Below, in pieces: positions 19,131 to 46,621 of a stretch of 64,000 bases of DNA. The first letter of the stretch is position 1. The number at the start of each line of letters is the position of its first letter. The stretch covers positions 36,709,743-36,773,742 of the forward strand of contig CM074515.1 in NCBI GenBank assembly GCA_037379345.1, given 5' to 3'. The notes under the pieces were generated by a model. It was not told the DNA's origin. It saw only the letters and a list, made by a program, of their open reading frames with translations, and made no database searches. Source of the stretch: Perna viridis. Taxonomy: Eukaryota. The translations under genes were made by a program, and so were the position numbers.

Positions 19131-22100
19131 TACTTAAACCAAACAAATTTATAGATTTGTCCTTCATAAATAAAATTGTAGCACAGCATTCAATATTTGT
19201 TCAATTCATGTATATAAATTAAGTTAACATTTTTATGCAAAAGTGCAAATACATTATCAAATATTTGGGAGTAAAGCACTTGTGTCATATTTAAAACAAA
19301 TCATTTGGAACTTAGCAACAATCAAGCAAATAACACCTCTATAAGACATTATAATTACACATATATTATTGTCTTCACATACGTGTACAACCACACACAT
19401 ATCATGCATCACCACAAAATACATACTCATTTTTAACACTGAAGTTTGAACCAAGACTGGGAACACACAAGAAAATTCATGATATACCATGAGTATAAAA
19501 CAAGTAGGAGTTGAGACAAAATGTTTTTATACTATATAATTCAATTGTAATTGTTTTTGTTGACAGGACATATTTAAAGGTGATTGCGTATTGTAAATAA
19601 TTGTTGTAATCTTATAGTACAATATGAAAACAGCGAAAGAAACAAAATTATTTTACTATCTAAACATTAACTGTATATTCAGGCCGTTTATATCAAAAGC
19701 ACTACCAATTAGCCTGATACATAGGGTTTCACTTTAGTGAGATAAAGGTTGCAAAAGCCCCCCACCCTACCCCAAAAAAATAAATAACCATTTGATAAAT
19801 CTTCAGTTTCTAAAAAAGTATCTATCACTACTATTTCAATATAAAACAGAAAATGATTGACTCTTAAATTTGTACATGTAAAGCTTCTTTCTATTTAACT
19901 GATATAAAAATAAACTTTCTAATTAATACCTGAACTTACAAAGAGGAGAAAAGGGTACATGCTTACAGATCTTCAACACATCACAATCAAAACCATACAG
20001 CATGCATATATATATGGCCTCTACCATTGGTATAATCTGGTGGAATGAAAGACACTGAGCACTAAATTTAAGTACAATTTCTCTTAAGATCTTGCTGTCT
20101 ATGTTAATCAAATGCCCAACCATGATTACAGTACATATCATAGCTTGTAACCTAAAAATAGTAATACATTGTACATGTACAGGTATATAAAGAAAAGATG
20201 GCACTTATGGAAGACTGCTAAATTCTCACGCAATATGAAATAATGTCCACGTCATTTTATAGTATAAATTCATTATGAGAATTTCAAAGTTCTTATAACT
20301 GCTTATAATCAATAGAATCAATAAAAATATTCATTAGGAAATTTACTCTCCCTCTCTAAGCCAGTGATTTAAAAAAAAAAAAGCATGTGACTTAATCCTC
20401 CGAGCAGTTATCAAATTTTTGCAAGATGTTCCCTGTCATTTTACAAGTTTTTTTTTAATACAGATTTTGCGGGAAAAAAAATTGTCTTTAGCTAATTCTT
20501 GATTTAACCATTTCTCCGCTCTTTATGGTAAAATTCTGATTTTTTTACATGCTCACTACAGCTTGTATGTTGAAGATCTAAATTTTTCCACTTCGAATTG
20601 AGAAAAAATTTAAACCAATCATTACTCAAGGTGAATCTACATGTAAACACTGTATAATCCTTATAGTTGTCTTGTTTAATATTTCTCATTTATTTAACAA
20701 TGACAGTAGGACCTTATGAGACTAGTACTATAGAATGTCAAGCAGTTGCTAATACACACTTAAAGATACAACAAACTCATAATAAACCATTTTCATGTTT
20801 ATGCAAATTAATCTTTAGACATAAATGCTCTTGTATTGATTAGCAATTAATCATGGAAAACGCTTAGCATAATAGGCTTCATCATAAAACTAATTCTGAA
20901 AATAGGCAAATTTTTAATTGGGATGATTTTCACTATATTTCTTGTTATGAAATATCCACAAAAAAAAAAATAACCCCAATGTCAAAATGTTCATACTTAC
21001 CACGAAAATTTATTGTCATTCATAAATACTTAACAGGACAACTATTCTATTTAATGTCAGTAAATGTAAGAAAACATGGGGTTTACAAAATTCTTTAACA
21101 CGGCTTTTTAATGCAAAATTAAGAAATTAGTTAAGGGTGCAGGACAAACTAAAAACTGTAAACAGAAAACTAAATAATCAATGGGTTTTTTACTTGAAAT
21201 ACATGCAAGAATGATTAATTTCTGCACAGTCAGGTTAATTCATGGTAGGACTTGCCAAAGTTGCCACAATCTTCCAGTTGTTTTTATCATCTGGATTGAA
21301 GGTCAGAGACAAGATATATCCTGATGACAATATTATGGAATGAAGAAGAAAATAAGAGATCACTCTAGTAAAGCTTTGTAATATTAAAAAAAAACAGTAA
21401 AAAGGTCAGTATTCATAGATTTTGCAAAAGCCTTATTTTACAGGGGTTAAACTTTACCTATAAGAGTGAAAAGTTCTGTTCTTTCTCCACTCAAGGAAAA
21501 CAAGTCCCCAATAGAGTGACAATCATGAAGTTTATAGTCAAGGGCCAAGGTAAATGAAAATTTTAAAGGTCAGAGGTCAGAAACTGGGAGTCCTGGACCT
21601 CAGACCACAACTAATTTAATCCCATTGTTGTGTAACACATTGTATATGTAATTTTGAAAATCAATGCATTTTTTCTATACAGAAAACACCAAGATGTTAA
21701 GTTATTAATACTTCAACAAGTATATACTTAAATATTATAAGCATTACGGTAAAAAATAGCACAATATACAAAATCTAGTAGTTAATTAAAGTTACTCTAC
21801 TCGAAACAGTTATTGCATCTTGAACATAAATATGCATATAAATAAATTATCATCTATCCCAGCACTAATTTATTAACAAAAAGTCTAAAGCATTTAAATA
21901 AATCAATTCAACAACCTACATAGCACTTTAGTTATGACACTGTGGAATGTTTAGAGGTCTTCATCAATGCAGATTAAAAATCTCAGAAAGGGCAACATTA
22001 CCACATAAAGACTGGTATAATTTTGTCACATGTACAGTACCAGTTAGTACTATGAAACAGAGTGAAATTTCACCAAAGTCTTTGAAATAGTTAGAACAGT

Positions 22101-22829
22101 ATACCTCTTTAGTTTGCAGGGAGGTCAGCTGGGTAAAATTGTGTTATATTCTGTAATAACCAGTTATTGGAATTTGTGTACACAACTCCCTCCTTATATT
22201 AATCATATAACAGATGAAAATTAAAAAGGGGAATAATCTACAAAAGTAAACAAAACCTGGGGAATGGATAACCATAAAACATTACACCCATCAAATTAAC
22301 TTACAAAAATACCATGGTAATTACAGGTAAAGGGTAAATGAACTTACATTAAGGGAGCAGAATGAATAGTTAACACTCTCTCAAATATAAGAAGACGCAA
22401 AGAGAAGCTTAACTGCCATTTTTAAATGCTTTACATATAGACTATTTTTTACATGTAGGTAACAATCATAGACTTACTCCAGTTAACAGTTTTAAAACAT
22501 GTACTTTCTAGATCTTTCACGGTTTATTTATAATCACGGATAGAGAAATGTTTCCATCCCTGAGCATAATGAGCTATTGTATCATAACAAAACAAGACAA
22601 AAAGCAGAACTTTAGTGTTTGTTCACTGGCTCTCACACTTTCAATGCATTATTAGCACAGAGAATCACAGAGTGTGTCTACTGTTTTGATTGGATGATAT
22701 CAGTGAAAAAATATGAGTGATGTAATATGGCCTGTCATTGGTCAGTCTGTTCCAAGGGAACAAATGCCTCCAGATAATTGGTCATGTCCAAGCTGCCATT
22801 CCAACAGCATGCACACAGCAGAATACTTT

Positions 22830-25800
22830 TTAATCTATGACAGACATTAAAATTTGTACTTCTTTATACAATTGTCCCAATTTTCCGGGTGACGACTGTT
22901 TCTTTTGTATCACAACTCTGACTTCACATAAATGATTATAACAACCATTGCACTTCTTGATTCTGCAAAAAAATGAAAATCTAGAACAAGATCCAAGATC
23001 TGTACTCATAGCTTTCATATTCTATCAATTGGGGTCAAATCATAACACAATGTCTTTTATACTGCAACTGATCTATACAACCAGTAAATAAATTGACCAT
23101 ATACTTCCAGGTGAAACACAGTCACTATCTGAATAAAACTGCATTGTGACTTGAAGTTAACAAGATAATCAACATTTTCTTTTTTTTTATTGTTTTGTTA
23201 TGTTTTAAATGCTGGCAGTTGGTCCTGATGATTGTGCCTGAAGAATTTCAATATACATGTATTAATACTCTTCTGTAAAATTGAGACTATATTTGAGGCT
23301 GTTGTCAATATTTAGTTGTGTATAATTTACCTTTCCTCTCTGGACAAATCAACACCTATACTTGGCGCTGATGTAATATTAGACTTTATCACAGGTCCAA
23401 AATTTCTAAGTATAATCTTCAAGGCATTACAGGCAGCTTCAACATGACTGAAAAAAAAGGTCATTTGAAAAGAATTCAATTCCTTCTTGATTTAGCCAGT
23501 AATGAATTATCAAATTTTCGTGTGTAATAAATTTCACTCCTTATGATTTGGTTGTTTCATATGCTTCTTGGACGGCAAGATATTTGTGATATCAAAAATA
23601 TATGCGATATGAAAAATTTGCTGTCATAAATGGTTTTTGTGTATCTTTCTCTACAAAACTGACTTGTTGAAAGCAACCTTGTGATGTTTCTTATGATGTT
23701 CTCCAAAAATATTGGTGAAGTCACAGACAGAAGATCATTAAAATTTCTATCATGGCAGATGCCAAATGTCAAGCAGACAAATATTTAACAATTTTTTGCC
23801 ATAACCTCCAAATTTAATAAAGCTTTTCCATCTTGACTGTATACTGTAAAAGTACTATTGTTTGTGGGTTACCAATATTTTCTCCATGTTTTCATATGGC
23901 ACCTCCATTAAAGAAATAAAGTCCTACACTGGTTTCACACATTTTTCCACTTTCATATAGCAAATATGTATAAAATGAGTATAAGAAAATTTACTAAGTT
24001 ATTTCACAAGGATTTTGACAAAAATGTTTGAATTTGTATTTTATTGCATATATTTTTTTTCATGATATTGCTAAAATCAGTTTTTAATGGTAAATCTGCA
24101 TTTTTCCCTTTGATCTTGTTGACAGACAGTTCCTTATCTCTAACTACGGCTATTCCAGCAAAATTTCCCTGGAGGGAGTGAAATGCCACTTAAATATTTA
24201 TACCTTGGTTGGAGGTATTTCTGATATTCTACACAATTTAATGAATTGGTACCCCTTATGAATTGTGGCATTCCACCTCCTTCTGGGAAATTTTACTGGA
24301 ATAGCCCTTAGAAATATATGACATCTTCTTTTAAAGTATTGAATGAAAATGCGATCACATAGCAACAGTGTGAAGACACACACCTAGATTTTTTTTTGCA
24401 TGACAACAGTCCAAAAACTAAATGTACATTAAAATGATTAAAACTGCATAAAGAAAAAAAATTCCTTTCAATTTGATATTGTCTGTATCAAAACCCAAAT
24501 AAAAATTATTCTGTATATCTCATTACCTTTCATATTTACTAGTCAGGAGATCTTTGACTTGAGGTAATAAACTACTACACAGATCTAGGTTCCATAATCC
24601 ACTAAAAAAAAAACCAAATATTATGTTATATTAGATTCCAGGTCAAATGTCGATTTCGTTCAACTCCCTATGGTTTTGCCAATGGCATTTCAACTTGATT
24701 TTGTCTTTAGGACTATTAAAAAAAAAAAGAATGTATGGGTCTGTCCGAAGAATTTTTTTTCATTTTACCCCACCATGGATAAAACTATAATATATTGTTT
24801 ACTGTCTTTCATAAATCAGGTTGTCAGAAATGACAACCACCCATCAATTATTAATTCAAGTGCCTTCTGACACCACCCCATACAATTATTTCTAAAAATA
24901 GCCGTTAGAGAAGATTAAAGTGTTAGTCTGTAGCAGCATGTTACTTTTCCACATTATTTTATCTTTAGTGTGGCTTGTTCAAAGGTTCAAATTAACTTTC
25001 AAGTGTGGAGGGTCCTGGACTATTTGAAATTTCAAATCAGTGGTACATTTGTGGAAAAAATAAGTATCATTTGGAGTTTTGAAGGTCAAGGACCCAGGTA
25101 AATGAAATTTCAGTTCCTTAGTAATAAATTGAGGGTCCTGGATCTCAAACCACTACTCAACCCTTTCTTAAATTAACCAAATTAAAATCAATAACCCTTG
25201 CAAGGTACCAATTTCATGTACAATCTACTTATATTTAATTCAAAAAGTACAAGTGAATGACAAACTAGAATAAAAAACAAAAAGTGAATTTTGTGTATTT
25301 TTGCCATGCATGAAAAACCTCCTATCTGATAGTTGAAAAGACTGCTATTTACTTTTAAGTACCATTCTGTGTAAGAATCAGGCAATGGGTGGCACAACAT
25401 TTTTCCCAATTTAGTCTTTTTTGCCTAAAATATATCCAGTACATCTAGAAAAAAACCAAAAAGCTAATTAACTTTATCCTGAAGCATCTGTGACATAAAT
25501 ATTTTTGACTACTTATATAGGGAAAGAGTGCAGGAAAATTTTCCCAACATTTTTCCATAGATTTCAACTAAATTTGACTTATCAATATCAAATTTGACTT
25601 ATCAATATCATAAAAGGGCAAATTTTACAAACACTTTGATGGTCACTTCTGGTGGTTTCAGCTATAATTAATTGGTGAATGCAATAAAATCTCTGCGTTT
25701 TTTCCCTTCATGTGCCACACCTTATATACATTTTGCCCGATTCTTAAACAGAGAAGCACTTAATACCATTTTGTAAATCCACTTTACATTCAGTACTTAC

Positions 25801-28800
25801 GTTTTTAAATTAAGAACATTTAATAAATCTACTATCACAGATGGATCTCTCATAGATATTGCTGAGTCTAAGGCAGCCTGGAATAAGACAACTTAAATGT
25901 ACAGATCTGACTAAATATGGTGTTTCATTATATTAAAGAAGGTCCATTTGTTAGGATACAGTTTTGTCAGTATTTATACCAATGTAAGCAAAGCATAAAA
26001 AAAGTTAAAACATGCACATGTATGTATAATGTAAAAACTGTTCAAAAAAGGACATAAAAAGACTACAGCTTATTCTTCTAAAATATAATATGGTAAATAA
26101 AATGCAAGCCATAATGAAGAAAAATGGCTGAGATTTACTATAAAATAACATAATGAATTAAATACAAATTGGATAAAAAATAACTTAATTGTGGCAAACA
26201 TGCCAATTCGTTTGAGAAGCATGTTTAATGATCATACTTTAGTATTCCCTGATGTCCACATGGCTCTTACAATCTGTAAATTTTTACTCCTTGCAGACAT
26301 GACAGCTGACATTGCATCGTGTCCATTATGTATTGTCTGTCTTACACCTTCATCAGTAGCAACAGTTTTCTTATTCCCTGGCTGTTCAGATTTCTGAAGA
26401 GAAAAAGATATTGTAACAAGGCATTTTCTACGATTTGGTTGTTTTATCTACTTCTTGGATGGCTAGATATTTGGGATATCACACCATAAACGATGTGATA
26501 CAAACAAGTGATTAGAAAAATTCATTGTTAGGTTTAGTAGCTGTGTGATTATGTATAATTTTTTTTATCAAACCTGATTGGTCGAAAGCAACATTATGAT
26601 GTTTCTAATGCGGTTCTCTCAAAACCACTGGTGAAGTCAAAGAAGAATCTGACTGATGCCGTATGTCAGGCAGCAAAAATATTCCAAAGGAATCATACAG
26701 AAAACAGCCTGTTTGTTATGATGTTGAAATTAAATAATTGAGTTGATATTCTGAGATATTTAACTTTCACTCATTATGAAACCTATAAATATCCAGCTCT
26801 ACTACAAAAATAGTTCAAATATTTTTTTTTACCCATCAAAACCATAAATTTGACAAATTTCTACTTCAGAAGGTGTCAATCTCTATCTAACTCTTTAGAA
26901 AAGACCAATTTGAAAATCACATTAACTGGTTGCACTAAGTTACAGTAACAAGCTAAGAAAAACTGAAGGGGGACATAAATATGTAATTTACACACCCTGT
27001 TTAGTCAATTCTGTGACTGACTACACAAAGATTAAAAAAGAGATATCACTTACTGGAAGAAAATCTTGAGCTGAGATTGCTGACTCTTTGGGAGGTTCCC
27101 TGGGCGACTTTACAGGCCGTGTCTGTTTTGTTACAGTTTTGGTCACTGGTTTGGATGGATCTGATTCTGTTCTACCTGTAAACAAAACAATGCCCTGTCA
27201 TTTCACATTTAATACATATCTTGCCTATTGAAGATAAGGTTGACAAATTCCAGCGCTCCAACTTCTTTCCCCTATAATCAATCTTCCCTCTCAAATTGGT
27301 AAACAAAAATAGTACTCCAGCCAACTTAACTTCTGTCCCTCTCACTCATTTTTCTAACTCTCTTCCTCCCAGGCCCTCAAACTTTACTTCTGTCAAATAA
27401 ACATATTCCCAGGGATCAATTTCTATGATTTTGAATAATGTAAACAATTAATAGTGTTAAAAATCAGTTTCCCCGATACTACTTTTCACTTGTAAATTAA
27501 TATATTTATATACATGTAGTATAATATTTAATCACATTTCAGTGAAATGGCCTTTATGACCAACATCATAACTCAACAGTAACTTCCTTAACTCAACCTT
27601 TGCACTTAAAAATTGTGGGATTTGCAGAAACAGTAATAGGGTTGTGTACGAAGTAAGTGCTCAATACAAACAAATCTTTTTTTTTAAAAGTGCACTAGAA
27701 GTATGTAGATGATATATGACGTGCAATGCTATTTAGTAATTGCCATTTCTGAAATATAAAGTAAAGTCAATGAAACATTGCCATGTTAACTTCATATTCC
27801 AGCTTGTGATAGAACCCAGAGTAATTAGATTTTCATTACTGTAGTATCTTTTAAACTAATTTCAGTGAGCATTCAACTGAAATGTTCACTCACACACAAA
27901 CCTAACTCAAGTTACTGAGCTTCCATGATACACAATTTGAAATAGAAGAAAACTAAGTTTCATATATAAAAATCACTTTAAAAGTGAATGTAACCTTAAA
28001 AGATGGACTAGTATAATTGTTTAAACCAAAAAAATATTCCCATGAACATGACACAGGTTGAAAATATCTATTAGTACCGGTGTGCAATAACTAAAAATTT
28101 AGCAGTAGTGTCAATTAAGCTCAGTACAAAAAATAAGAAATGTCACAACTAACAGATTCAAATAAAGTGAAAATCTTTCAGGGGTGTGACTGACAGTGAT
28201 CAGCCATTGACAGTCACAGCAAACGAAATTTTACCACGGGATTTTAATTTGGGCCGTTTTCTTGTTCGTTGGGGTCCAAGTATACTTGCTGAAAATTTTA
28301 AGTTAAAACATTTTTGCATTTGATCCTGAAAAGCATTGGGATTGCTCATGGTTGAAAAGAATTGCTTTTCAATTTGATGAAATAAGACTATTTGTGCATC
28401 AATTGGGGTTATAAACTATTTTCAAATGTTAACGAAATCCATATTGAACTGGCTATATATAATTGTGTAAGGTTTTCTATATTGGCTGAGTTATATAATT
28501 GTGTAGGGTTTTCTATATTGGCTGAGTTATATAATTGTGTAAGGTTTTCTATATTGGCTGAGTCCTCAGCTAATCATATTGGATCAATAACTAAGCCAAT
28601 ATGGAAAACCATGTACAACAGTACTATCAAATCTATAATTGACTTATGTACTGTCCAAAGAAAAATAGATGTGCAAAAGCTAATGCAAAATAGTGACTTA
28701 CACTAAATGAAAAGGGAACAAAGGCAATGATTTCACATGATTTTCACTTGAACTTCACAAATGTCACATGAATTTAACAAATAAAGCATGCCACATGTGT

Positions 28801-31800
28801 AACAGTAAATATAACCACTTTCAATAGTTAAATGGGACACCACTGTGACATCATTTAGAGTGCATGTGAAATTCATACGAATTGAGCAATCACATCAATT
28901 TCATAAGAACTACAGTTTCTGAGAATTTCATGTGAATTACAATAAATATGTATTTCATATGAGCAATATTTGCCTCTGTAGCCTAATTCTGAGTAAAATT
29001 TATGATAGTGCTCTATTGCTTAAGATTCAATGCTATCTCTCTTTGAAAAGATCATAATTTGATCTCTACATCACAGGACTGATACGAAACTTTTCCATAG
29101 AATGTTAGAAAATGAGGTTTTGACAGAGTTATCTGCCCTTGAAATGTTCATTGTCAATGCATATCAATGAAATTATAACTTTTTTTTTCATACCATCTTT
29201 CATCCACTGCCTGATTCTTACAAAGACTGCCATAAAACTATACTAAAATGAATTATATAAAATAAAGAAAGTAGATTGATACTGTAATAAAAGAAATGTT
29301 GATTTACTTAAATACATGCAAAATATTGGCATAAAGTGAGAGTGATGCGACTTACTAGTAGTCTTTTTAATAGGCTGTTTGGGAGCAGGTTCAGGCTCTG
29401 GTGCTAAAACAAAACACAAGGTGCAACTCAAAAGCTCATGGTAAAGCAGTCAAACATATAAATGCAAACCCTTCCCCCATAGAATGAAGCTCTAAACAAA
29501 CAAGAAGAAACAACAGTTAAAATATTATCACTCTATCATATCATTCAGCAGGTATGTTTAAATTTTCATTATATTCTAGAGGTAATCAGAGGTATGAAAA
29601 TAAAAGCTCGCTATTTTTTTTTCTACAAAAGTACATACATACCACAAATTTTCAAGGGGAAGAAAGGAGCTTGAATTAAAAACTTGTTCTCATAAAACTA
29701 ATTCCATAATTTGGCTCATGCAAAAATTACCTGCTATGAAATATGTTATAGAGAGATACATGCATATTTCATTATCAATTAGAAATCTTTCATTTTTACA
29801 TAACAGAAATAGCAAGCATTGGTACGTGTTAAAGTCTTTGAATTCACAAAAAAAAAGTGACTTTAAAATCAGGCAAAAGTCACGACACTACTATTTTAAA
29901 GAAATGCATTGGACAACTGACATCATATCTTACTACTGAATTTTTGTTTACACTTTTTGTGAGCATGAAGAATGAATGAACTGGTAATGAAAAATCTACA
30001 CCTAAAAAGACTAACTTTTGAACTTTGCTGGTTTTTGGTTTTTGTTTTGTTATTGTTTTCAATGGAAAAATAAACACTACTATCAAAAAGATTTTTAAGA
30101 GGTAAGTAGTTTCTTAATTCCTGGCTTAAAATATATACAATGTGTTAGTGTGTTTTTCTTATAAGATGTTAGGCTTTGCCAAAGAGGGACAGAGTTATCT
30201 GTACTTTGCTGATGATACACCATGTCATTATGAATGCTGTCTCTAACAAAATAAATATAGCCACCCTACAGCTGTGTTAAAAGTTAAATTTGAATAATCA
30301 CTTCCGAAATATGTACCTTTTCAACAGATAGATTTTCACAATGATTTTGCGCCATTCATGTTTCAGACCCATTAAATAAATAAGACGTTGATGACACTCT
30401 GTCCCTATTGATGTCTAATAAAACTTACTGGTTTTCTTAGGAGGTGGTTGTTTCTTAACTGGTTCTGGTTCACTGGGTGCTGAAATTTAAATTTTTTGTA
30501 GAGGCATGGGGCTTTGACTTAAAATTCAATTCTATGACATAGTTCAATTCCCTTTTTTTCATTTATAGTACATTGAAAATAAAATGAGTTACATTTTTTA
30601 TCGAAATGTCACAGAATATTGTTCCTCTCTCAAAAATGTAAGATCTATAGGTTTTTTGTTTTTAGATACATGTAGGTAATCATCCACTTCAGTAAACAAC
30701 ACATTCAACTCTAAATGTAATACATGTAATCAAAAGTAGCATATGTTATACCTATAATATCAGTTTTGTAAATAAGAAATGTTCCAGAATTAAATGTAGG
30801 GGGAGTAGGAAGGCACTTTTTTCTCTACTCTACCACCCACAAATCAAAATTTATGTTTATTGTCCAACACAAGAAATACAACTAACCCACAACCCATAAT
30901 TTATTTAATAGAAAGGCCTCCCTACACTATACCCCTATTATTCAGGAACAAAAAAAAAACCCAAATTTTTTTTTTCAATTCTGGAACAGTTCTCAAATGA
31001 AAAATTGACAGAAAATAGCACAGACCAAGATAGTAAACATACCACTATGTCAGAAAATAAAAACTTCTTGCATATCACCATGCCAAACTAATCACAGCTG
31101 TTCCATAATAACTGCTTTTATCCCTCCCAAACAATTCTAAATTCTTATTCATCAAGTACAATCCAATTTTTGTTTTATATATAGTTTTAACATGTTACAG
31201 CAAAAAAACGTTAAAATGGAGCAGCTAAACAAAACACATGAACAGCACATATAACATACAAAATAATACCTTCCCTATATATATTCCTGATATACATGGT
31301 ATTAAAAATGTCAATTATCTCCAAATTCCAACATGCATGACTTACTAGATATAACTATGGTACGCCTATTTGTAAGACCTAATCAGTAAACATAAATGTA
31401 ATTATTTGGCATAAATTATCTAGCTAACAGAAATTATTGTTCTAAGAAGACACACATAAAAATATTTATGGTGTAAGGCAATACAAAATAGAGATCTCAT
31501 TTCTAGAATTGATCATACTGGAGCTGGATTGTTTCATTTTAAAGTTAGTATAGTATTTAAATTATTTTTCCTATGTTTTTCTATCAATTTCAAGCTTGTG
31601 AAGCTTCTACAATTTGAGCATGATGCATCAACTTCTAAACTGAATTCAAAGTCCATACATTATTAAACTGATACCAAACAAAACAACAATATTCAAGCCA
31701 TTTTAGAAAAAACCCAAAGAAATGTTAAGTTCATAATCTAGCAAATAGATGCAGAGAGGCAATACTATTTCATCATGCAAGAAAACCAAAACTGCAACTT

Positions 31801-34800
31801 TCCGATTTTTATCCACACACTGCTTATGATTAACTTAGCTTCAAACAGATATGTTCATATACGTTTTATTTTTTCCTGATAATGATGTTTCATTAATGAT
31901 ATCAGGGCCCACCCCAAGAAACTTAAATTTCAAGGATAATGAAAAAAAAAAATTCAAACAAAATTTTGCAATACAACCCTAGCACCATGTAACAATATAA
32001 CTGTTTCATTCTTGAGCTTGAATAGATGAGCAGTAAGCTACATAATTATGCATTGTTACAGAAACTATCTATTGCGGACTCTGACTACTTAAAGTAAACC
32101 ACAGGAGTTTAGATGTGAGAAAAAGAGATAGAAAACTTAGACAAACATGAAAATATAATATGCATCGGTTAGCATGAGTGCAAAAAAAACCTCAAAAAAA
32201 AACAAAAAAACAATGCTTATCATCTTAAATTACTTGCATATGTGTTCACATGACTAAACATATATATATATGCACCTAATGGTAACTTGAGGGGGAGTTC
32301 TGATGTGACCTAATTCGATCGTAAGTATATTTACCATCTTCTGGAGGTGCAGGGAATGGCTCCACCTTCCGTACAGGTGATCTGGAAATACGTGATCTTG
32401 GTTGAAATATTTCTCTATAATCTTCAGGATTCTGTATGTCAGCTGATGAGTTGTCTTTCTCCTCGTCATTGTCATGTGTAGGTTCTTCTGCTTCCTCTTT
32501 CGGTAAACTATCAAATGATAAAAATAATGTGTAATTTTGAATAACGTTTTTCATCTTACGCATATCATAACCAGTTAACAAAATTTCAGATATTTTCATA
32601 ATAGACTGAATTCAAAAATTTTCTGTATATGTAGAAATATTCACCTTGCACTCAAATTCCACAATGTATATTTAGATTCATTATTTATTATTATCTAGAT
32701 TACGCTGTTGAATTTGTCACTAAATCTTTTAAATCTGTTAAAATGTAGGATGTTAGATTTTTGTAAGAATAGCTGACATCGATTTAACACTATGCACTAA
32801 CCTGGCTTGTTTTGTTGAAGCTGTTGGTGGTCTTTCTGTTACGAAACTTTTCCTACTACTGCAATCCAATTCATAGAAAACTCAAGTTATAGAACATATA
32901 AATTTTGGAAGCATGAATATTTCCTTTAGAGTTTATCATTGGCAAATGTGTATAGAAATGTTCACAATCTGTGGTTTTTCTACAGAGGTATTCAGATTAT
33001 GCAGGCTGTGGCATAAACAAGTTTCCCTGTACATAAAGTTTTTTTTTTCCACTTTCTTACTGAAACAATTGACTTAATGATATCATATTATACGCATTAT
33101 AAATGTGTACATTTTGAGAACAAGAACAATGTTATTAGTCTTAAATAGGCAGTTTACCTAAAAACTTCATTTTTAAACAATGCCTTATATGTTTTGTAGT
33201 TATCAATCATACACTGGGCAGAACTATCAGTCCTGTTTGGTAGAAAAATTAACACTCAGAACAACTCTACACAAATTATACATACATCAGAAAATGCTAA
33301 ATCACAAGATACACAAGCATGTAGAAAATTCATTATTATATATAAAATGCCATTAAGATTTATTAACAGAAACCTGAGTCACAGAAGAAAAGCTTCAACT
33401 CTTAACATCGATAGCAGCAGAAAGTAAAAAGATCAACATAACTCTTCCTATTTTGATAAAATGCAATTTTAATATAACAAACCTGTTTAAATGCTGTGAT
33501 CCTTCTTGATGTGGTACACCACCAAATGGTTGCACCTTCTACAATATAAAAAGTATTAAATTTCAGATCTTTGGCAAGAAATAAGCAATAAAGTATTCTA
33601 GGGTCATTATCCAAATATGAAGAAATCCCTAAGTTCACAGATACGATACAGACTGACAATAATCAAACATTTTTTATTCATATTAGGGTGCTTTAAGTAG
33701 TAATTGTAATATATCATGACATTTTTAACCATTGGATTATTACACTGAAAGTATATATGAAATAAGAACTGTTAATACTTTTCTGATTAACAGTAATTTA
33801 GAAGGTACCAGAGATTGATTACCTGTATATCAACAACATAACAAGAGACATTAGTCTGTGAGAAAGAAGCTCCAATCTGTAAAATAAAGAAAAAAACACA
33901 ATGTTACAGTTTAATGTTCTAAAAAATGGTTCAGAAAGAAGATCTGATCTGTAAAGTAGAAACACATAGTTACAGTTTATTTGTTCCCACCCAATAAAAA
34001 TAATTGTTGTGTAGATTTTATGTGTTCTTTTACTTGAATGGGTCAAACATCAATAAAGAGGAATATAAATAACACAAAACTAGTTAATGTTATGAAAATG
34101 CTTGTCATGATAATCAACATTTTCCTGATAGTATAGAAAAAATGACTTAAACAAAATCCTTCACTTGAAGCACGACTGATTAACAAATCTATATACCCCT
34201 AAACTTTGTTGACACATCATGAAAGTCCTATAGCTTAGTTCAAAATGAGAAAAATTAAGTAGGATAAAAAGAAATTTCAATCGTTTATACCCGAGTTTTA
34301 CCATTCTTACAACATGTCACCTACCAACTGATTCTGAGCTAGTGTGATATGTGCGACATCACCCCATGATATTGGCACACTATCGAAACACTCTGGGGGC
34401 TCCCATCCATACACTTTTAACAGATCTTTTCCTCCACTGAATAAACAGACACCATCTGGATGGTACATCATTGTTCTGCAAAATAGGAAAAAATAAAAAA
34501 TATTTATTTCCACTTGTTTATGTATTTCTTTTAACGAAAGCTTTATTTATGTTCATTTTCATTCGACCATTTGCTTTCACTATAAAGGCATCCTGACTGG
34601 AACTCTCAAGCTTGTCTCTAGGTTTAAGAGATTGTGTATGTACCATGGTGTTTCTACAATTTTCTTACTAGCTTACCAATAAAAATATCTATTAAGCTAC
34701 CAGCAAGCTTGCCACTCTGTATGAAACAAAGCAACATCTAGACCTATTACAATCATTAAGGCAAAATTAAACCTGAAAACAGTTTTTTCTATGACTCTTT

Positions 34801-37800
34801 TATCTCCAAGACAATTACCTTATTGGTGTAGCATTTCCATCTGTAGAAGATACCATACTAAATGTTTCTAAATCCCAAAATTTTATTGTCCTGAAAACAT
34901 ATATATATTATTAAGCAAGCTCTATGCAAAGTAATTGGTATACTAGTATCTATCAATGCATAAAAATATTCTTTTTATACATTCATGAAACAGATAAATA
35001 TTCTGTTTTTACAGCATTCATGAACAATAATATAATGGATACAGTTTAACAGATTAAACATTTGTTCAAATTCTATTGCTGCTCCTGCATTTAACTCCAA
35101 CAATCAATCAGTCAATTAAAATTCTATCTCTGAATGATCAACAATTCACTTATTTACTTGTGAAAAAAAGACTACAGTGATAATTTTTTGATGGCTATAT
35201 TTGTTTGCATTCAACTGACTGACACTACAATACTATATAACTACAACTATTACAGATTTTCCATCACATAGGAGCAGTTTAATTCATTTCTGCACAACAG
35301 AAATTTAGTTTGAACTTCTATACTTATAGTGTAGAAATAATAAAAATAAAGACAACCCAATGAGAATAAGTTTCTTCCACGAAATATATAGTTTATTTAT
35401 TGATACCATGACAGGATACAGTTCCAAGAAAATAATCATCACTTAGTGGTAAGTCTAATGCATACCTAATCAGTAGCTGAGAATGAAATCATTGAAATAT
35501 ACCAGAATTCACATACTTATCTGAACTGCCTGTTCCTAAAAGTAATTCTTTCGGATGGAATTCAACAACATTCACTGAATCTGAATGTAATGTCAGGGTT
35601 GTTAATACTTTTCCAGCAGTAAGATCCCATATCTACAAAATTATTCAAAATATATTTGTTTATACTGGAAAAAGGTTTAAATTAATATCAACTGAAATAG
35701 ATAATAACAATGCAATTTTCATAAGTAAAATTACCATGTATCCATTTGAAATAATTTCACAAATTCAGCTAAGTTGTGGAAATTGATCAATTCAGAAGAA
35801 CATATCATGGTTTTTCGTCACAGTAATGGGTTTTAAGTAGTGGGATCATTTCATATACATTTTCCTCCGGAACTCCAACATTCCTATTTCACTATCTGCA
35901 AATAAAGACAACAATACACTACCTTAACCAGACCATCTGCTCCTCCTGAAGCTATCAGTTTACCATCAGGACTAAATCTAAGGCAATTAACACAACCAGT
36001 ATGACCCTAAAATAATAATTTGAAATCCAAATAAAGAAATTAGACAAATGGGTCAAAGACAGAAATGGTTGGGTTGCCGTAAACAGTGGCTGTGATTTAC
36101 TGATCACCATTTTATAAGCCAAATTTGCACGAGTGCAACCAAGCCAAAAATTACTTAATATCTAAATTACTCAAAATGGGAGATAGCTTGAAAGCATCAA
36201 TTTACATAATGAAAAATATTAAGAAGCGATTATAAAAGATTCTATTGGTTCAAAATATGAGATAGCTTAATTTTTTAATTAAAATATTTTAAATTTTATT
36301 CATATACCAGAATGTATATTACTGGAAAATAATAAGTGTATTGATCATGCACCACAAAATGTTACCAAAATCAAATCAAATCTAATCTTGTGTTACATAT
36401 TTATGAAATAAGCATGTAACAATTATCTGTGGATTTTCACATTTAAAAATATACTTGTACTTACTTTATAATTATATATACATCCCTTTCTTCTTATATC
36501 CCATAACTGCAAAAAAAGTTGTAATAGACAGAAGTACAGCTTTAAAACCAACATTTAAATTTGATGATATAAGTTACTGTATGGTTATGAACAAACTATA
36601 TTAATGTTAGACTTCTATCACTTGAATTTGAATGACTCAAACTCAAATTATTTCCCAGTGTTTGAAATAGCTTCATAAATAATGTTTAAACTTCATTGAA
36701 CAGTATCTCAAAAAAATTAAAAATTCAAACTTGTCTCTTTAGTCAATAATTTCAGTATTATTGAACTCATGTTTTTAAATACAATTTCTTTTTTTCAGAA
36801 GTAGTAGATTGTTACATGTCCAGCATTGATCAACATGATTACGACTAATAACAAGAAATTCAAGTACGCTCATGTTCAATCTATTTATAGAATACCTTTA
36901 TATTATAGTCTAAGGAACCAGAAGCTGCATAATCTCCATAAGGATGAAAGTCTAAACTACGAATACTGGATTTGTGACCGGTTAAGGTCCGAATAACTGA
37001 AATAATAAAAATACAACAAGGTAAAATACAAATACACTTGAAATGATCTGTGGGGATGCAGCTTGATAGGACCATACAGTCAGAACTCGTAACATTTGGA
37101 ACATGAATAGATATGTAACATTCAGGTTTGTTTACAGCTTGTGGTGATTCAATCATAAGTTTCTAACACAGTAAAGAAGTGGACAAAGATTAATAAATTA
37201 AAAGCAACCCTCAAAGTCAATCACAGCCTTCCTTTTGTAGCATTGAAACAATGTGGTATAATATTATAGAGATCTGTACATTGATAATCAACTAAGTGTC
37301 AGGAAACCAAATGTTTAGAGACAACAACAACATCCCTATAATATTATTTGACAGCAAATTGTTTTCGTAAAAACAAATCATTACAATAGCTACAAACATG
37401 CAAATCTAAACCATAATTAATCAGACATACATGTATTGCCTTAACGCATTTTCACGTTTTCATTTTCAAAACAAATGTCATTAAGATTAAGTTTCTTTTT
37501 TTCCTGATCAAAATTAAACATCTGTATTTTCCCTAAATGTATTGGTAGAGCAATATGAAGAACAGTGTATTTTACTAACTTTTGGCCTGCTCAAGGTCCC
37601 ATATTTTAAGAGCACCAGATAAAGATCCTGCCATTACCATCTCTTCATCAGGACCAAACCGTACACTGTCTACTGGTGTTGTATGACCTGTCAAACTCTA
37701 CAAAAAGAAATAAAAGGTGTATAATCATAAATAAACTCTACCCCATTTTAAATTAACCTGTACCTATTTAGTCTTTTGCATTGAGAAAATGCTGAAACAG

Positions 37801-40800
37801 AAGTATCTAGAAACAGTGAGAAGGAATCGACTTTGTGAGACCCCTTTATTAAATTGAGTGAAAACTTGACGGTAACCATATGCAAAATTTGAATTTCCTC
37901 TTATGAATGGTAAAAATGTGACACACAAATCTGACCATGAGGCAAAGTTCACAGGCCATGGTACTTAATATATGGTTTGGACGTGGTCTTCACATAAGCC
38001 TGCCAATTACCAAAAGCCTAAAAAAAGGTTAAAGTGGGACATTATTTGATACCGGAACACAAAAAAGTAAAAACACAAAATTTGACTGCACAATCAAAGG
38101 TCACAAACTGGGTGCACAACACATTGCCTTGAGGTGCCCAAATATCAAAAGCACATCTTCAAAAACAAAAACAATATGGCCCAAGCACCATTTGGTACAG
38201 ACAGACGGAACACACATACCATAGGACAGGGCCTAAACAATGCATTGAAAGCATTCATTATATCGCTATAAAAAATTAAGACATTACAAGTGAACTTTAC
38301 ACAAATACATTTGGTGCTCAGATTAAAAAAAATGTAGTTTCTTCTAATCTTGGACTGAATTTCATCTTCCTTGGTCAATAGGCTTGAAACAGCATTTATC
38401 TTTTTTGCTATTGCCAGCTTTCATTCAACTTGTATACACAACATACTAGTACTGTAAATGTATATTCTACTGACAATCTATGCATGTCATTTTAGCTCTG
38501 TCTATAGAAAATAAATTAATTACCATAACACAGTTGGGTTTTCCAACAGCCCATAGATTGACTTTTCTGTCTTCTCCTCCAGTCACCAGAACTCTCCCAG
38601 ACTTTTCTCCCAATGCCAGACAGTTTACACTGGCACTGTGGGCTACAAATTCCTCTGGAAAAGTAAGTAATTGTACATGATGTACCTTTGTTTTCATACA
38701 ACTGGAAATGATCTAAATAATGCAATTAACTTCAAAAGTCATACAAAACGACATGGAAAGTGCATGTAAAAGCATAAATATGGTTAGTAAATATCACAAA
38801 TAACTGCAATAAAAAGGTACAATGTATATGTGTATTTTTTTTAAAAAGTTTTGTTTGTTGTTGTAAAATCTTCCATGTTTAATAAAGACAAATGCATTTT
38901 TTGTAATTATACTGAAAATCTACTGAATACTGTTAGGAAAAACTTACAACCTTTTTCATACATGTATATTTTTATAATTAATACATATACATATGTGTGA
39001 AACTACGTTTATCTTTAAAAACTGTAAGTAACCCACACAAGAATACCTAAATTACTTTACAAGATGCCAGTTGGTGAGCTTCAATTCAACTGATGTCAAA
39101 ATTTATATGGTTAAAAAATATCTTCATCAAGTTCATGATTTGTTCTTGTAAGCTTATTGTCACACATTATTAGAAACATGTTTTAATGATTCAAGATAGA
39201 TAATTCATAATTCACTAGCAACGTATGTTCCTTTGAAATCATTGGATATTATAATATATATGTGAATTGGACAAATGGACTGCACAGGTGAATGGACATA
39301 GGGCATACAGATTCAGAGCATTACTAGGAATGAACCCAATACCTAAATTTTGTGGTGAATGGGCATATTCAAACTTGTGGGTAGTCACTGAGGAAAATTA
39401 TGTATTTTCCAATTGATGAATTTCACATTCATCATTTACATTAAATCAGTTGGTTAACAGTTTTACCCTAGAAAATAGAACTACATTGTATGTACTTTAA
39501 AGACAAAAAGTAAATGAAATGCTTCTATAATGATACAGGGCCTAATCTAGAGGGAGAAATGAGCAAAAAGTTCTCCTTGTTTGTGCTCATTTCTCCCATT
39601 TGTCTTTGACAGGGAGAAATTTTGTACATGTAATAGATTACATAGACAAAAATGTCAATATTGTCATTTTTAAAACAGAATTTACTTCAGCTTTTCACTG
39701 ATGTCCTGATTAAGCCTAAATGATATAATAATAAGTTCTTTGTTAAAATCAAATTCACATTTCTGCTCCCTTGAGTCTCATTGTAATGCTCCCAATCTTA
39801 CAAAACCACATTGACCTCAATACAAATAAAGAACTTTTTCAGAACCTAAGTGAAAGTAATCTATTGTTTTCATCCTGAACTGTCCTTAAACTCAATGATT
39901 AATGATGTCCCAATGTAAATTTACATTGCTTCTCGGAGATCAAAACATCATTCAGAGAAAGAATCTTACGTTGTTCCAGGCAAAATGTCAACTCAGTATT
40001 GTGGCAAAAATGTAAGTGATTGAGCACGACTTATGATCTATTGGCATGTGGAGTTGTGTTGCATGCACATGAACCTACCGGCGGTTGTTCAACTCTACCA
40101 GAATTAGAACCTTTCTACCGTTCTACCATTGAAACAGAAAATCTACCACTATCTGAACATTTTACCATATTAAAACAAAATTTGGACACCATTTCTTTTA
40201 TTTACAAAAGGAAAAAACCTGAGAGGATCAAAAAACGACATTTCAGGTTGATCTCAGGTAGACAGGTGAACATGTTAATTAGGGTCATAAACAGCAATTT
40301 AGAGTTTTAGTGGTTATCAATGTGATAATAATTAAAAGGTGTGATGATTATATAACAACAGGAGATGATTGACCATCATACCAAGTTTTAGTGGCACACG
40401 CTGAAATGATTAAACGATTTATTACCGACAATTAATGGGATTCATTGTGTAAATATTGATGCAGGACTTTAGATCTTTTGATGGTTATGGAAGCATTGAC
40501 CATACATCCACTGAAAATGAAACTGACTCAAAGTATGGCTTGTTTTTTATGCAAGTCAATGGACGAATTATGTGAATTTTTTCAATTTAGAGCACTCTCA
40601 TCAACTGTTAAAATGCCGAAATGTAATATTTCATCTTCAGCAAAGTATTATTCCCAATTCAATGCTGCATAGAAGTCAAAGTGGTGCCAAGCCAGTAATA
40701 ACTATTTGAAATGAAATCATTTTGATGCATATATAGAATTCTTGTCATAATTTCACTTGTTTAATATGGCACCTAGTTAAAATGGCACTTGGTCAAAATG

Positions 40801-42140
40801 GCACCAGTACATAGTTAAAATGGCACCCATCATAAATGTATGTTTAATCATTTCATAATAAAAATATTTTAAATGAATTATTTATAAAAATGGGAAAATA
40901 AATAATGCAATAAAAATACTTAGTGAAATTAAATGAAATACCCCCAAAAAAATAAAATGTGAAATTTATCACAAATAAAAACTATATTAAAATTCAGAAG
41001 TAAATATCACATATATTACTTTGTAAATAATCTTATAAAACATAAATTTTACAAAAGTAATGTGGATATCAGAACATACCAAGATGGTAATTGAAGTAGT
41101 GAAATAATCTAATTAAATAATTATAATACCTGTATCACCTATTAAATAAACCAAACCATAAATTATAGGTAATTAGCAAAGCCATGAACCATAATCCAAT
41201 TCCCAAACTAATTTACTTCCAAATTAAACTTTAGGTCAATCTAATCACTCTCTCAAGTTAAGCCTTTGATCAGTCTAATCATTTTCACAAATTAAATTTT
41301 AATTAGAATGATTAGGCATAATCATCATATAATTATATTTCAGCAGGAACATCAATTAATTTAAAAATACATTTTACAAAAAATACTATAATAAACCAAG
41401 TGCCATTTTATAGAAAATAAGTGCCATTTTGACTACATGAGGTGCCATTTGAACCAGATGCCATTTTAACTATTTACATAGGTACCATTTTGACCAAGTG
41501 CCATTTTAACTAGCACCCCATATTTATACAAAAGTAGTTACTGTAGTGACAACTTTTAAATGAAAATTATTTAATTAATAGTAGATATATAGTAATGATG
41601 ACACTCTTAAATTTAAAGTTATTTATGTTTATGCTGTTCTTGTTATGAAGATATTGTCATTAATAAATAAAATCATTAAGATGTTCAAGTGTTAATCCAT
41701 CAAAACGGTCATTCCAACTATTCCAATGAGTGATCAACATTTTTTCTCATGGATACAGACTTAATGCAATGTTTTTCTATAAGTTTCACACATATTTGAC
41801 TTCTTACACTGCGAAAAAAAAAAGCTGATAAAAAACCTCCAGTTTACAAATAATGTCAGTGACTTTATCACATGTATGCCGGTGTTGAGAGACTCAGTAT
41901 TTCAGTGAGATTGGTGCAATAGGATTAATCATAACAGAAAAGTGATAATTTCACCCAAATTCTGCATCGAATGTGTACTATTGTACAATTATTATTTCCC
42001 TAAGGCGAACCAACCATTCATTTGTAAAAAATATTTTTTGGACTTAACTATAGTATACCTTCACGTTTTGTCTTACATTCGTAAAATATCGTGTTCTTGT
42101 GAAACTTACGTAGCTTCCATGCCCTCTTTGTATGTGACAT
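22830..42140 (-). CDS. KATNB1: Katanin p80 WD40 repeat-containing subunit B1
   Basis: Core exons 5'->3': 42110-42140, 38524-38654, 37580-37697, 36896-36996, 36465-36506, 35923-36006, 35517-35632, 34819-34890, 34325-34475, 33823-33876, 33483-33538, 32802-32858, 32335-32507, 27054-27175, 26238-26393, 25801-25877, 24527-24601, 23331-23447, 22830-22962 (1866 nt, 621 aa), plus optional linker exons. Protein: [16 protein letters not shown]..., [32 protein letters not shown], and con80 domain WNLDLC...[16 protein letters not shown]. Confidence 0.96.
23530..23790. repeat. Interspersed repeat; second copy at about 26430-26690
   Basis: Shared gaaagcaac.tt.tgatgtttct.atg..gttctc...ggtgaagtca core in two KATNB1 introns. 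Confidence 0.55.
25359..25759. mobile_element. TTAA-flanked MITE of about 400 bp (family shared with 44454-44840)
   Basis: TIR gtaccattctgtgtaagaatcaggcaa / ttgcccgattcttaaacagagaagcac with TTAA on both sides; internal 20-bp direct duplication at about 25570-25610. Confidence 0.8.
28235..28288 (-). CDS. KATNB1: Candidate 54-nt symmetric KATNB1 linker exon, (T)[17 protein letters not shown]
   Basis: aaaattttcag|CAAGTATA...TCCCGTG|gtaaaa; GC-richer than flanks, open in frame, phase 1-1. Confidence 0.6.
28450..28620. repeat. Three 36-bp tandem units followed by an inverted copy (small hairpin element with amplified arm)
   Basis: (tatataattgtgtaaggttttctatattggctgagt)x3, then ctaagccaatatggaaaaccatgtacaa, which is the reverse complement of the unit. 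Confidence 0.8.
29356..29403 (-). CDS. KATNB1: 48-nt symmetric KATNB1 linker exon, (x)[15 protein letters not shown]
   Basis: gttttgttttag|CACCAGAG...ACTACTA|gtaagt; in frame and similar to the 51-nt exon. Confidence 0.8.
30169..30418. mobile_element. Probable MITE next to the donor of the 51-nt exon
   Basis: Inverted ends agggacagagttatc / gatgacactctgtccct. Confidence 0.45.
30429..30479 (-). CDS. KATNB1: 51-nt symmetric KATNB1 linker exon, (A)[16 protein letters not shown]
   Basis: aatttcag|CACCCAGT...AAAACCA|gtaagt; in frame, phase 1-1. Confidence 0.8.
31346..31378 (-). CDS. KATNB1: Candidate 33-nt symmetric (phase 1-1) mini-exon of KATNB1, [11 protein letters not shown]
   Basis: tttatgtttactgattag|GTCTTACA...ATATCTA|gtaagtcatgcatg; open in frame, with UGCAUG 8 nt into the downstream intron. 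Confidence 0.55.
40759..41513. mobile_element. Foldback-like element with modular inverted arms
   Basis: Left arm repeats of aaaatggcac (40759-40828) are mirrored by gtgccatttt repeats (41399-41513). ctagttaaaatggcacttggtcaaaatgg is exactly inverted at the right end. Very AT-rich core. Confidence 0.75.
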
Positions 42141-45300: not shown

Positions 45301-46621
45301 TAATGTGCCTGAATTCATCACAACTTCAGCTTCTTCTACATCCAGTACCAAGATTAAATAGTTAAAAAAAAAAAACAGAAATATAAATTTAATGAAAATG
45401 GAGATAATATGAAATGTCAAAAAAAGTTAAATTTCCATTACAATAACAATATTATTAATTGAATTATTGTCTCATAGCTAGTAAATCAAAACATATGCAA
45501 TGTCTTCAAATTTGAAATAATATGGAAACATTTTGTACATGTACACCAGCATTTTCATGAAGAAAGTATGAATCATTGATCCTATTATGAATCCACTAGC
45601 CACACAGATACATGTTTCATAGGCCAAGAAAAAAATACCTGTGTTTTTGCTAACATGCTTCAAAATCTAGGGTTGGTAGGAAGGGAAGGTGATACTTTTT
45701 ATTTTTTCAAAAGTTTTTGACTGGTTTGTTCTGAAGACTCATTCAGACTTTAATAGTGCTTGTTAAAAATGACAATATGACACAAGGGTAGGCAAAAAAA
45801 AATTAGGGTTGATAGGGTTAGTGTTAACAAAAGTAGTTTTTTTTTAGGTTTTTTATTGTTGAGATAAGTTAGGTCTTAGGTATTGCTGATCTTCCATATG
45901 GAACTTCAACTGAACTGGCAAGAAAATCAGGCTTTATAGACCTTCTAGTTTTAAGTCCACTTTGATAAATCAACATTAGTAATGCTTTAAGTATTCAGCA
46001 GAGCTTTCAGTTGCTTATTTAATTTTGAGTGGATGTGTATGTTATTTTGGTTATTTCATGTTTTTTGCTGTTATCCATTGATTTCTATTGCAGTCAAAGA
46101 CTGCATTGACTTACTAGGTCAGGATCACTTTTTCACTTGATTTCATCATTATTTCTTTTGTAGAAAAAGACTTTTTGGTATTTTTCTTTAAAAGACTCCG
46201 AATGAACAATACCAACAGATATAGAGAGGATTTCCCATTTTTATCACTCTGTGGCAGGGAAAGAAATTTTGTGCGGTGTGATGATAAACCTATTGTGTAT
46301 ACCCATATTATTCCTTCTAATAGTGATACTGAATTAGACAAACTTTCTTATGGAGGGGCTGGACCTGCTATGACAATAGAATTTGAACCTGAAAAAATCT
46401 GCATGTTACCACATTCAGGAAGAGTTTATTATCCTGCCTTTGAAAAACTTGGAGGAATTGGTCTAATCAAATCTAGTTTAGCAATAGAACTGAGTAAAAA
46501 TTTTGAATTTGGAAACAATGATGAAAATCCACCCACACATTTCAACTGGAAAAATAAACATTATAATCTTACTAATGAACTGATAAAGTTGATGGGGCAA
46601 TATTCTCTGGAAGTTGATTAA
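42396..46621 (+). CDS. C8orf82: UPF0598 protein C8orf82 homologue
   Basis: Exons 42396-42530, 44389-44437, 46164-46621 (642 nt, 213 aa). Sequence VSYIQGQSPEPKIREYFYYIDHHGQ|LFLDDARMKNFTSCFK|...FPFLSLCGRERNFVRCDDKP...GRVYYPA. Basic/hydroxylated N-terminus resembles a mitochondrial presequence. ATTAAA at 46666. Confidence 0.92.
43170..44100 (-). mobile_element. Decayed non-LTR retrotransposon RT fragment in C8orf82 intron 1
   Basis: WIKAFLTNR, LPQVLILAPTLFNLYI (degenerate PQG motif), KFADNG (degenerate FADD), WRMDINLEKTEICLF, KLLGAILDEKMTFRSHIE; multiple frameshifts. Confidence 0.85.
44454..44840. mobile_element. Second copy of the TTAA-flanked MITE (inverted relative to 25359-25759)
   Basis: ttaa|gtacttctctgtctaagaatcaggcaa ... 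ttgcccgattcttacacagaatggtac|ttat; interior aligns with the reverse complement of copy 1. Confidence 0.8.
44887..45265. mobile_element. Tc1/mariner-type MITE
   Basis: TA TSD; 18-bp TIR cagtacctgaaccgatcc / ggatcggttcaaggactg; CGATC/GGTCA-rich subterminal repeats. Confidence 0.8.

Follow-up and report, generated by a model that had tools for sequence, protein, structure and literature searches.

The microtubule-severing enzyme p60 is targeted and regulated by katanin p80, whose C-terminal con80 domain binds it; the linker of p80 is poorly understood. In mussels of the genus Mytilus, RefSeq lists katanin p80 B1-like proteins of 624 to 661 amino acids (aa) in three forms. Isoform X1 (657/661 aa) joins a core exon to a 17-residue unit encoded by 51 nucleotides (nt), a 16-residue unit encoded by 48 nt and the downstream core exon, X2 (641/645 aa) has the 51-nt unit without the 48-nt unit, and X3 (624/628 aa) is without both. 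All three forms are found in M. galloprovincialis, M. trossulus, and M. californianus, and M. edulis is listed with X1 and X2 only (examples are XP_071174981.1 for M. edulis X1, XP_052061328.1 and XP_052061330.1 for M. californianus X1 and X3, and XP_063439261-63 for M. trossulus). Here, we describe the orthologous gene of the green mussel Perna viridis, which lies on the minus strand of the window, i.e., the whole stretch of DNA that was analysed (64,000 nt; GenBank assembly GCA_037379345.1, contig CM074515.1, positions 36,709,743 to 36,773,742). The gene is a katanin p80 gene in which both small exons are conserved, and we consider it likely that it has a mytilid-type linker with a duplicated pair of small coding exons (51 and 48 nt), from which three forms are made.

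For exons whose inclusion is enhanced by Rbfox proteins, (U)GCAUG is enriched within 200 nt downstream (Jangi et al. 2014, PMC3967051), and many of the UGCAUG copies that transcripts contain have no Rbfox bound to them (PMC3967051). An earlier interpretation of the window, made from its letters and hereafter called the sequence-only reading, had proposed that the katanin p80 linker contains a combinatorial cassette of small exons with clustered Rbfox motifs. In a literature search, no publication on linker isoforms of this type in katanin p80 was found.

The gene codes for katanin p80

Local tblastn of M. edulis X1 and of the protein of a third mytilid against the window gave collinear exon matches from about position 42140 down to 22833, mostly 70 to 97% identical, with 85 to 95% identity to Mytilus in the WD40 region. 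WD40-type sequence was visible in the minus-strand open reading frames (ORFs) upstream of the linker stretch. When the exons were taken singly in a Pfam search with a cut-off of 27 bits, two of them matched WD40 and three matched Katanin_con80, one of the latter slightly below the cut-off (Table 1); the three con80 exons jointly span positions 2 to 30 and 81 to 160 of the profile. Because of these single-exon WD40 and Katanin_con80 matches and the collinear alignment with Mytilus, the gene was identified as katanin p80, as the sequence-only reading had it. The four exons in between, i.e., the two core linker exons and the 51- and 48-nt exons, had no Pfam match, are rich in Pro, Glu, and Lys, and align to the linker of Mytilus katanin p80 proteins. 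In a representative library search, the 57 residues of the upstream core exon were 82% identical to the matching part of the 641-aa M. edulis katanin p80 B1-like X2. With domain exons on both sides of the linker exons, the stretch codes for the linker between the WD40 and the p60-binding con80 domains, which also agrees with that reading.

Two small linker exons are conserved in Mytilus

The sequence-only reading had described four open stretches of 33, 51, 48, and 54 nt between the core exons, all multiples of three in phase 1-1, three of them with a perfect GTAAGT donor. All four could be located exactly; the 33-, 51-, and 48-nt stretches carry GTAAGT and the 54-nt stretch GTAAAA (Table 1). 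It had also suggested alignment of the orthologous introns as a check on these exons. We compared the loci of M. edulis, M. californianus, and M. coruscus, which were reached via their longest isoforms, Mytilus being the only other genus with genomic sequence in the comparison. Blastn with exons and their flanks detected, in the expected order, the upstream and downstream core exons as well as the small exons of 51 and 48 nt in the Mytilus loci. The two small exons of M. edulis and M. californianus have exactly 51 and 48 nt and the same phase, their AG acceptors are kept, and the donors are GTGAGT after the 51-nt exon and GTAAGT after the 48-nt exon. The sequences of both exons also recur in M. 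coruscus. The check on conservation hence separated the four stretches, with the 51- and 48-nt exons retained and the 33- and 54-nt candidates without a match.

Compared with Mytilus and the third mytilid, nucleotide identity is 82 to 88% for the 51-nt exon and 75 to 83% for the 48-nt exon, the latter with 5 to 6 synonymous versus 2 to 3 non-synonymous codon changes; in both exons, synonymous changes are at least as frequent as non-synonymous ones. Local alignment of the intron between them to Mytilus scored 26, against a mean of 25.6 for shuffled sequence. Since the exons are kept while the intervening intron is no more similar than shuffled sequence would be, the comparison points to coding constraint, of which conserved exons amid unalignable introns are the signature. 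Frame preservation, splice-site borders, and coding conservation come together in the 51- and 48-nt exons and do not in the 33- and 54-nt candidates. Judged by this comparison, the 51- and 48-nt exons are real, frame-preserving coding exons.

The two exons also resemble each other, each coding for a similar unit of Pro-Glu-Pro-Glu-Pro followed by Lys-Lys-Thr and standing in near-identical splice-site contexts. As they are alike in both peptide and splice-site context, the pair probably arose by an old tandem exon duplication, which would predate the split from the Mytilus lineage.

The two exons are alternatively used in Mytilus

Each of the three Mytilus forms was also found on Logan contigs of 1.9 to 3.0 kilobases (kb), which therefore represent spliced RNA, as the gene spans more than 30 kb. 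A form with the 48-nt unit but without the 51-nt unit was not seen among the Mytilus proteins and contigs compared. The longer protein models of M. coruscus have their differences in other parts of the protein. The 51- and 48-nt exons are alternatively used in Mytilus, where they occur both together, the 51-nt exon alone, or neither. The third mytilid, for which three ENA assemblies of complementary DNA (cDNA) and a single Logan contig were available, has both units. A mutually exclusive exon pair was considered and rejected, with Mytilus X1 and the third-mytilid cDNA holding both exons in tandem. The P. viridis pair is the ortholog of a splicing pattern that was already visible in the automated RefSeq annotation of Mytilus, and by analogy, the two exons would be alternatively used in P. 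viridis as well. Of the small-exon cassette originally proposed, what stood were the 51- and 48-nt stretches, which the Mytilus isoforms identify as frame-preserving cassette exons; no protein, transcript, or conservation supported the 33-, 54-, and 3-nt parts.

A separate observation concerns the third mytilid: a 920-nt JGI metagenome contig bears its con80 exon, which places host mussel DNA in that metagenome. Two metagenome scans for its host DNA, in which degenerate patterns of the two small exons were used, gave no matches.

Because both exons are multiples of three in phase 1-1, skipping of either would preserve the reading frame. The P. viridis gene most likely makes the same three forms as Mytilus, which carry both units, the 51-nt unit only, or none of the two. 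Inclusion would lengthen the disordered, Pro-rich linker from the WD40 propeller to con80 by 17 and then by 16 more residues, and would add a small net positive charge. Right downstream of the 48-nt exon, an Rbfox-type enhancer may act. Gene identity, exon conservation, and alternative use in Mytilus were observed directly, and alternative use in P. viridis, any effect on the protein, and any regulator are inferred. The length or charge of the linker may be a tuned property, given that mussels keep two skippable duplicated mini-exons and oysters vary the same junction otherwise (see below). The result is useful for correct annotation of the gene, and it makes the 48-nt exon a candidate for Rbfox-type regulation in molluscs.

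The 33-, 54-, and 3-nt candidates lack support

The peptides of the 33- and 54-nt candidates were in none of the katanin p80 proteins compared, and neither blastn nor a permissive peptide search gave a counterpart in the orthologous Mytilus introns. Likewise, the 3-nt candidate exon had no protein, transcript, or conservation behind it. We estimated how often such stretches arise by chance by counting intervals from AG to a donor that had a length of 27 to 60 nt divisible by three, no stop codon in the phase needed, and a pyrimidine-rich tract before them. These were counted in first-order Markov shuffles of the 5.16-kb interval and in the other 117 kb of the window (both strands). Candidates with a GTAAGT donor occurred 0.22 times per 5.16 kb in the shuffles (P of at least one = 0.18) and once in the other 117 kb. 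Those with a donor of the GTAAA class occurred about twice per 5.16 kb in the shuffles and 40 times in the other 117 kb, and the 54-nt candidate is therefore what chance would be expected to give. An equal candidate that the sequence-only reading had not listed, of 36 nt with AG and GTAAA borders (Table 1), illustrates how easily pseudo-exons originate in AT-rich introns. That the 33- and 54-nt candidates derive from repeats was considered and rejected, both being single-copy in their own genome.

Most likely, the 33-, 54-, and 3-nt "exons" are chance open stretches in AT-rich introns. The chance of ever being spliced in is, by our estimate, about a quarter for the 33-nt candidate, about a tenth for the 54-nt candidate, and slight, a few in a hundred, for the 3-nt candidate.

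Intronic UGCAUG motifs

Five sense-strand UGCAUG hexamers had been listed by the sequence-only reading, and all five are found where it placed them (Table 1). They span 2465 nt, for which the nominal expectation is 0.7 to 1.0. The claim that they are enriched did not survive correction for the scan. Across both strands of the window, UGCAUG occurs 44 times versus 35.3 in dinucleotide shuffles, 25 of the copies being on the sense strand. The probability of finding five within 2465 nt anywhere in the 64 kb is 0.05 with 18 sites (the shuffle expectation) and 0.21 with the observed 25, and 23% of the hexamers with 15 to 35 copies cluster equally densely somewhere in the window. The orthologous Mytilus regions contain three UGCAUG in M. 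edulis and one in M. californianus, compared to about 1.1 and 1.6 expected at the sense-strand rate of the window. The five-motif cluster as a whole is probably due to chance. An Rfam search of positions 22000 to 32180 gave no match, and no known intronic RNA family therefore explains the motifs.

Three of the motifs had further been said to sit just downstream of a donor. This applies only loosely: one motif follows the validated 48-nt exon (35 nt), the candidate exons next to the other two, of 33 nt (motif at 9 nt) and 3 nt, are unvalidated, and the remaining motifs lie 300 to 700 nt from any exon. The 51-nt exon has no UGCAUG within 200 nt on either side. Rbfox regulation predicts (U)GCAUG no more than about 200 nt downstream of an exon, where it enhances inclusion, or upstream, where it represses it; the 48-nt exon has UGCAUG at +35, and also at -313 and -355. 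In M. edulis, M. californianus, and M. coruscus, AGCAUG occurs 9 nt past the donor of the orthologous 48-nt exon, and one UGCAUG lies about 155 to 160 nt upstream of this exon in Mytilus. As to conservation of the motifs, which had been suggested as a check, a (U)GCAUG downstream of the 48-nt exon recurs at a different position (+35 versus +9). Orthology of these sites is unproven, the introns being unalignable and the genera compared being two. At a background of 0.45 to 0.88 GCAUG per kb, the joint chance of GCAUG within 40 nt past the 48-nt donor in both genera is about 0.001, or about 0.004 corrected for two exons and two sides, a post hoc estimate for sites that do not align.

Weighing the explanations

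Several observations weigh against the view that P. viridis makes three forms from the two duplicated exons and that the other candidates are pseudo-exons. No spliced P. viridis katanin p80 product was obtained from protein collections by word searches: the core-exon ORF matched only the genomic ORF of the window itself, the Mytilus linker returned no P. viridis protein, and a frog-fragment query (reaching lengths of 134 to 425 aa) returned vertebrate and unnamed matches, none of them from P. viridis. Both Logan contigs with the core exon were collinear with the genome, i.e., unspliced genomic DNA. Sixteen sequencing runs that are possibly RNA contain 5 to 24% of the sequence words, which fits anything from exon-only to intron-containing coverage and is uninformative on junctions. 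A stretch of the 33-nt type (AG/GTAAGT, open, phase-compatible) is expected only 0.04 to 0.22 times in the interval, and this one is followed by UGCAUG 9 nt past its donor. Lineage-specific exons, moreover, would escape a comparison resting on Mytilus as the other genus. Alternatively, the P. viridis exons could always be included, the skipping being specific to Mytilus or low-level splicing noise that was annotated. Both P. viridis exons have the consensus GTAAGT donor, the Mytilus 51-nt exon having GTGAGT, all three cDNA assemblies of the third mytilid hold both exons, and no skipped form of that species turned up. However, the three isoforms were annotated independently in three Mytilus species, full-length spliced contigs exist for each form, and frame-neutral exons whose size is kept across the mytilids compared are usual for regulated cassettes; we regard constitutive inclusion as unlikely.

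The other explanations concern the remaining candidates and the motifs. It could be that the linker contains four to five frame-neutral mini- or micro-exons, used combinatorially and included in nerve or muscle by Rbfox acting at the clustered UGCAUG. Every candidate does have an AG acceptor, a GT donor, and an open phase 1-1 frame, UGCAUG follows the consensus donor of the 33-nt candidate at +9 and the donor of the 48-nt exon at +35, a (U)GCAUG within 200 nt downstream is a known position for Rbfox-enhanced exons (PMC3967051), and oyster isoforms show that this linker is alternatively spliced in other bivalves too. We nevertheless find this very improbable: no katanin p80 protein and no contig derived from transcripts contains the 33-, 54-, or 3-nt candidates, which are also unconserved in Mytilus, about two stretches of the 54-nt type are expected by chance and an equivalent one is present nearby, the motif cluster has a P of 0.05 to 0.21, UGCAUG numbers in the Mytilus regions straddle the expected ones, and many UGCAUG in transcripts are unbound by Rbfox (PMC3967051). 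A smaller version, in which the 33-nt candidate is a lineage-specific, Rbfox-enhanced micro-exon of nerve or muscle and the basic 54-nt candidate possibly a fourth module, also seems rather unlikely. If true, the 33-nt exon would bring a third module, not rich in Pro, into a linker that bivalves splice alternatively in several ways, and new exons would have arisen repeatedly in the katanin p80 linker. Restricted to the 48-nt exon, the proposal is possible, though less likely than not: an Rbfox-type protein bound to (U)GCAUG past the donor would enhance this exon alone, the upstream copies being neutral or repressive. It draws on the motif at +35 in P. viridis and at +9 in the three Mytilus species, the low joint chance of this arrangement, the UGCAUG in the upstream intron of the 48-nt exon in both genera, and the fact that this exon is what separates Mytilus X1 from X2. 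On the other hand, the chance estimate was made post hoc, the distances differ between sites that do not align, the Mytilus copy is without the leading U, and the three Mytilus species are not mutually independent. An Rbfox gene was not located, the search for Fox-1_C (PF12414) being blank in this and all control genomes and hence uninformative. We therefore keep to the mytilid-type linker with two duplicated, skippable exons as the favoured explanation.

Features of the window and neighbouring sequences

The coordinates of the gene, its linker, and the motifs are collected in Table 1. Some further observations were made in the window. A 36-nt unit is present three times with 97% matches at 28456-28563, in intronic sequence that precedes the 54-nt candidate by about 170 nt, and a 104-codon plus-strand ORF (28392-28706) reads through it; this repeat is probably a minisatellite or what is left of a small mobile element. 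Minus-strand ORFs of 84 to 105 codons at 43065-44099, immediately upstream of the katanin gene, look like fragments of a reverse-transcriptase-type retroelement, as judged by eye from the ORF list. The longest ORF in the 15 to 50 kb part, of 148 codons on the plus strand (46175-46621), may be an exon of a neighbour gene on the opposite strand. In the Mytilus loci (M. edulis, locus positions 1-235, and M. californianus, 1-279), the neighbour of katanin p80 on its 5' side lies on the other strand and codes for a DUF4505 domain.

Table 1. Features of the P. viridis katanin p80 gene and its linker, with positions counted from the first letter of the window
Feature	Position	Strand	Description
Katanin p80 (KATNB1-like) gene	22833..42140	minus	coding exons collinear with Mytilus isoform X1
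WD40 exon	38524-38655	minus	Pfam WD40, 27.8 bits
WD40 exon	37581-37697	minus	Pfam WD40, 32.4 bits
Upstream core linker exon	32335..32507	minus	173 nt, ends in phase 1 with one base left over
UGCAUG	31774..31779	minus	deep intronic, 555 nt past core exon donor
33-nt candidate exon	31346..31378	minus	AG / GTAAGT, open phase 1-1; unsupported
UGCAUG	31332..31337	minus	9 nt past donor of 33-nt candidate
51-nt cassette exon	30429..30479	minus	AG / GTAAGT, phase 1-1, Pro/Glu/Lys-rich, conserved
36-nt equal candidate	29800-29835	minus	AG / GTAAA, open, phase 1-1
Two UGCAUG	29717..29764 (starts 29717, 29759)	minus	313 and 355 nt upstream of 48-nt exon; flank hypothetical 3-nt exon (29740)
48-nt cassette exon	29356..29403	minus	AG / GTAAGT, phase 1-1, paralog of 51-nt exon, conserved
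UGCAUG	29315..29320	minus	35 nt past 48-nt exon donor; sole motif with cross-genus support
54-nt candidate exon	28235..28288	minus	AG / GTAAAA, open phase 1-1, basic peptide; most likely chance
Downstream core linker exon	27054..27175	minus	122 nt, starts in phase 1; conserved in Mytilus
Katanin_con80 exon	26238-26399	minus	Pfam, 26.5 bits, slightly below cut-off of 27
Katanin_con80 exon	23330-23449	minus	Pfam, 38 bits
Katanin_con80 exon	22836-22964	minus	Pfam, 27.5 bits

Comparison with known systems

The closest described system is the katanin p80 B1-like gene of Mytilus with its isoforms X1, X2, and X3. The genes are orthologous and agree in exon order, in possessing the 51- and 48-nt exons, and in the phase and splice-site positions of these exons, whose Pro/Glu/Lys-rich peptides differ by 2 to 3 substitutions each. 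The P. viridis gene differs in belonging to another genus, with 82% identity in the preceding exon, and in having introns that are two to three times longer and unalignable. The donor of its 51-nt exon is GTAAGT, whereas that of Mytilus is GTGAGT, and alternative use is documented in Mytilus only.

With Rbfox-enhanced cassette exons (PMC3967051), the katanin linker shares a (U)GCAUG within 200 nt downstream of a cassette exon, that of 48 nt, which recurs in another genus. The katanin case differs in that its motif positions are unalignable, its motif density is not above chance, and most of the listed katanin motifs are far from any validated exon.

Katanin p80 of oysters (Saccostrea X3 versus X4) and Pinctada has an alternative coding insert at the phase-1 junction that directly follows the corresponding upstream core exon. 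However, this insert is a longer, Ser/Arg/Lys-rich segment (about 46 residues in oysters) with no similarity to the mussel exons. A similar Ser/Arg/Lys-rich segment is continuous with the core exon in genomic ORFs of two relatives. Because it runs on directly from the core exon in these ORFs, the oyster-type insert appears to come from an alternative donor (5' splice site) and not from a separate cassette exon. Together, these comparisons show that alternative splicing repeatedly affects the katanin p80 linker among pteriomorph bivalves, and does so by differing means.

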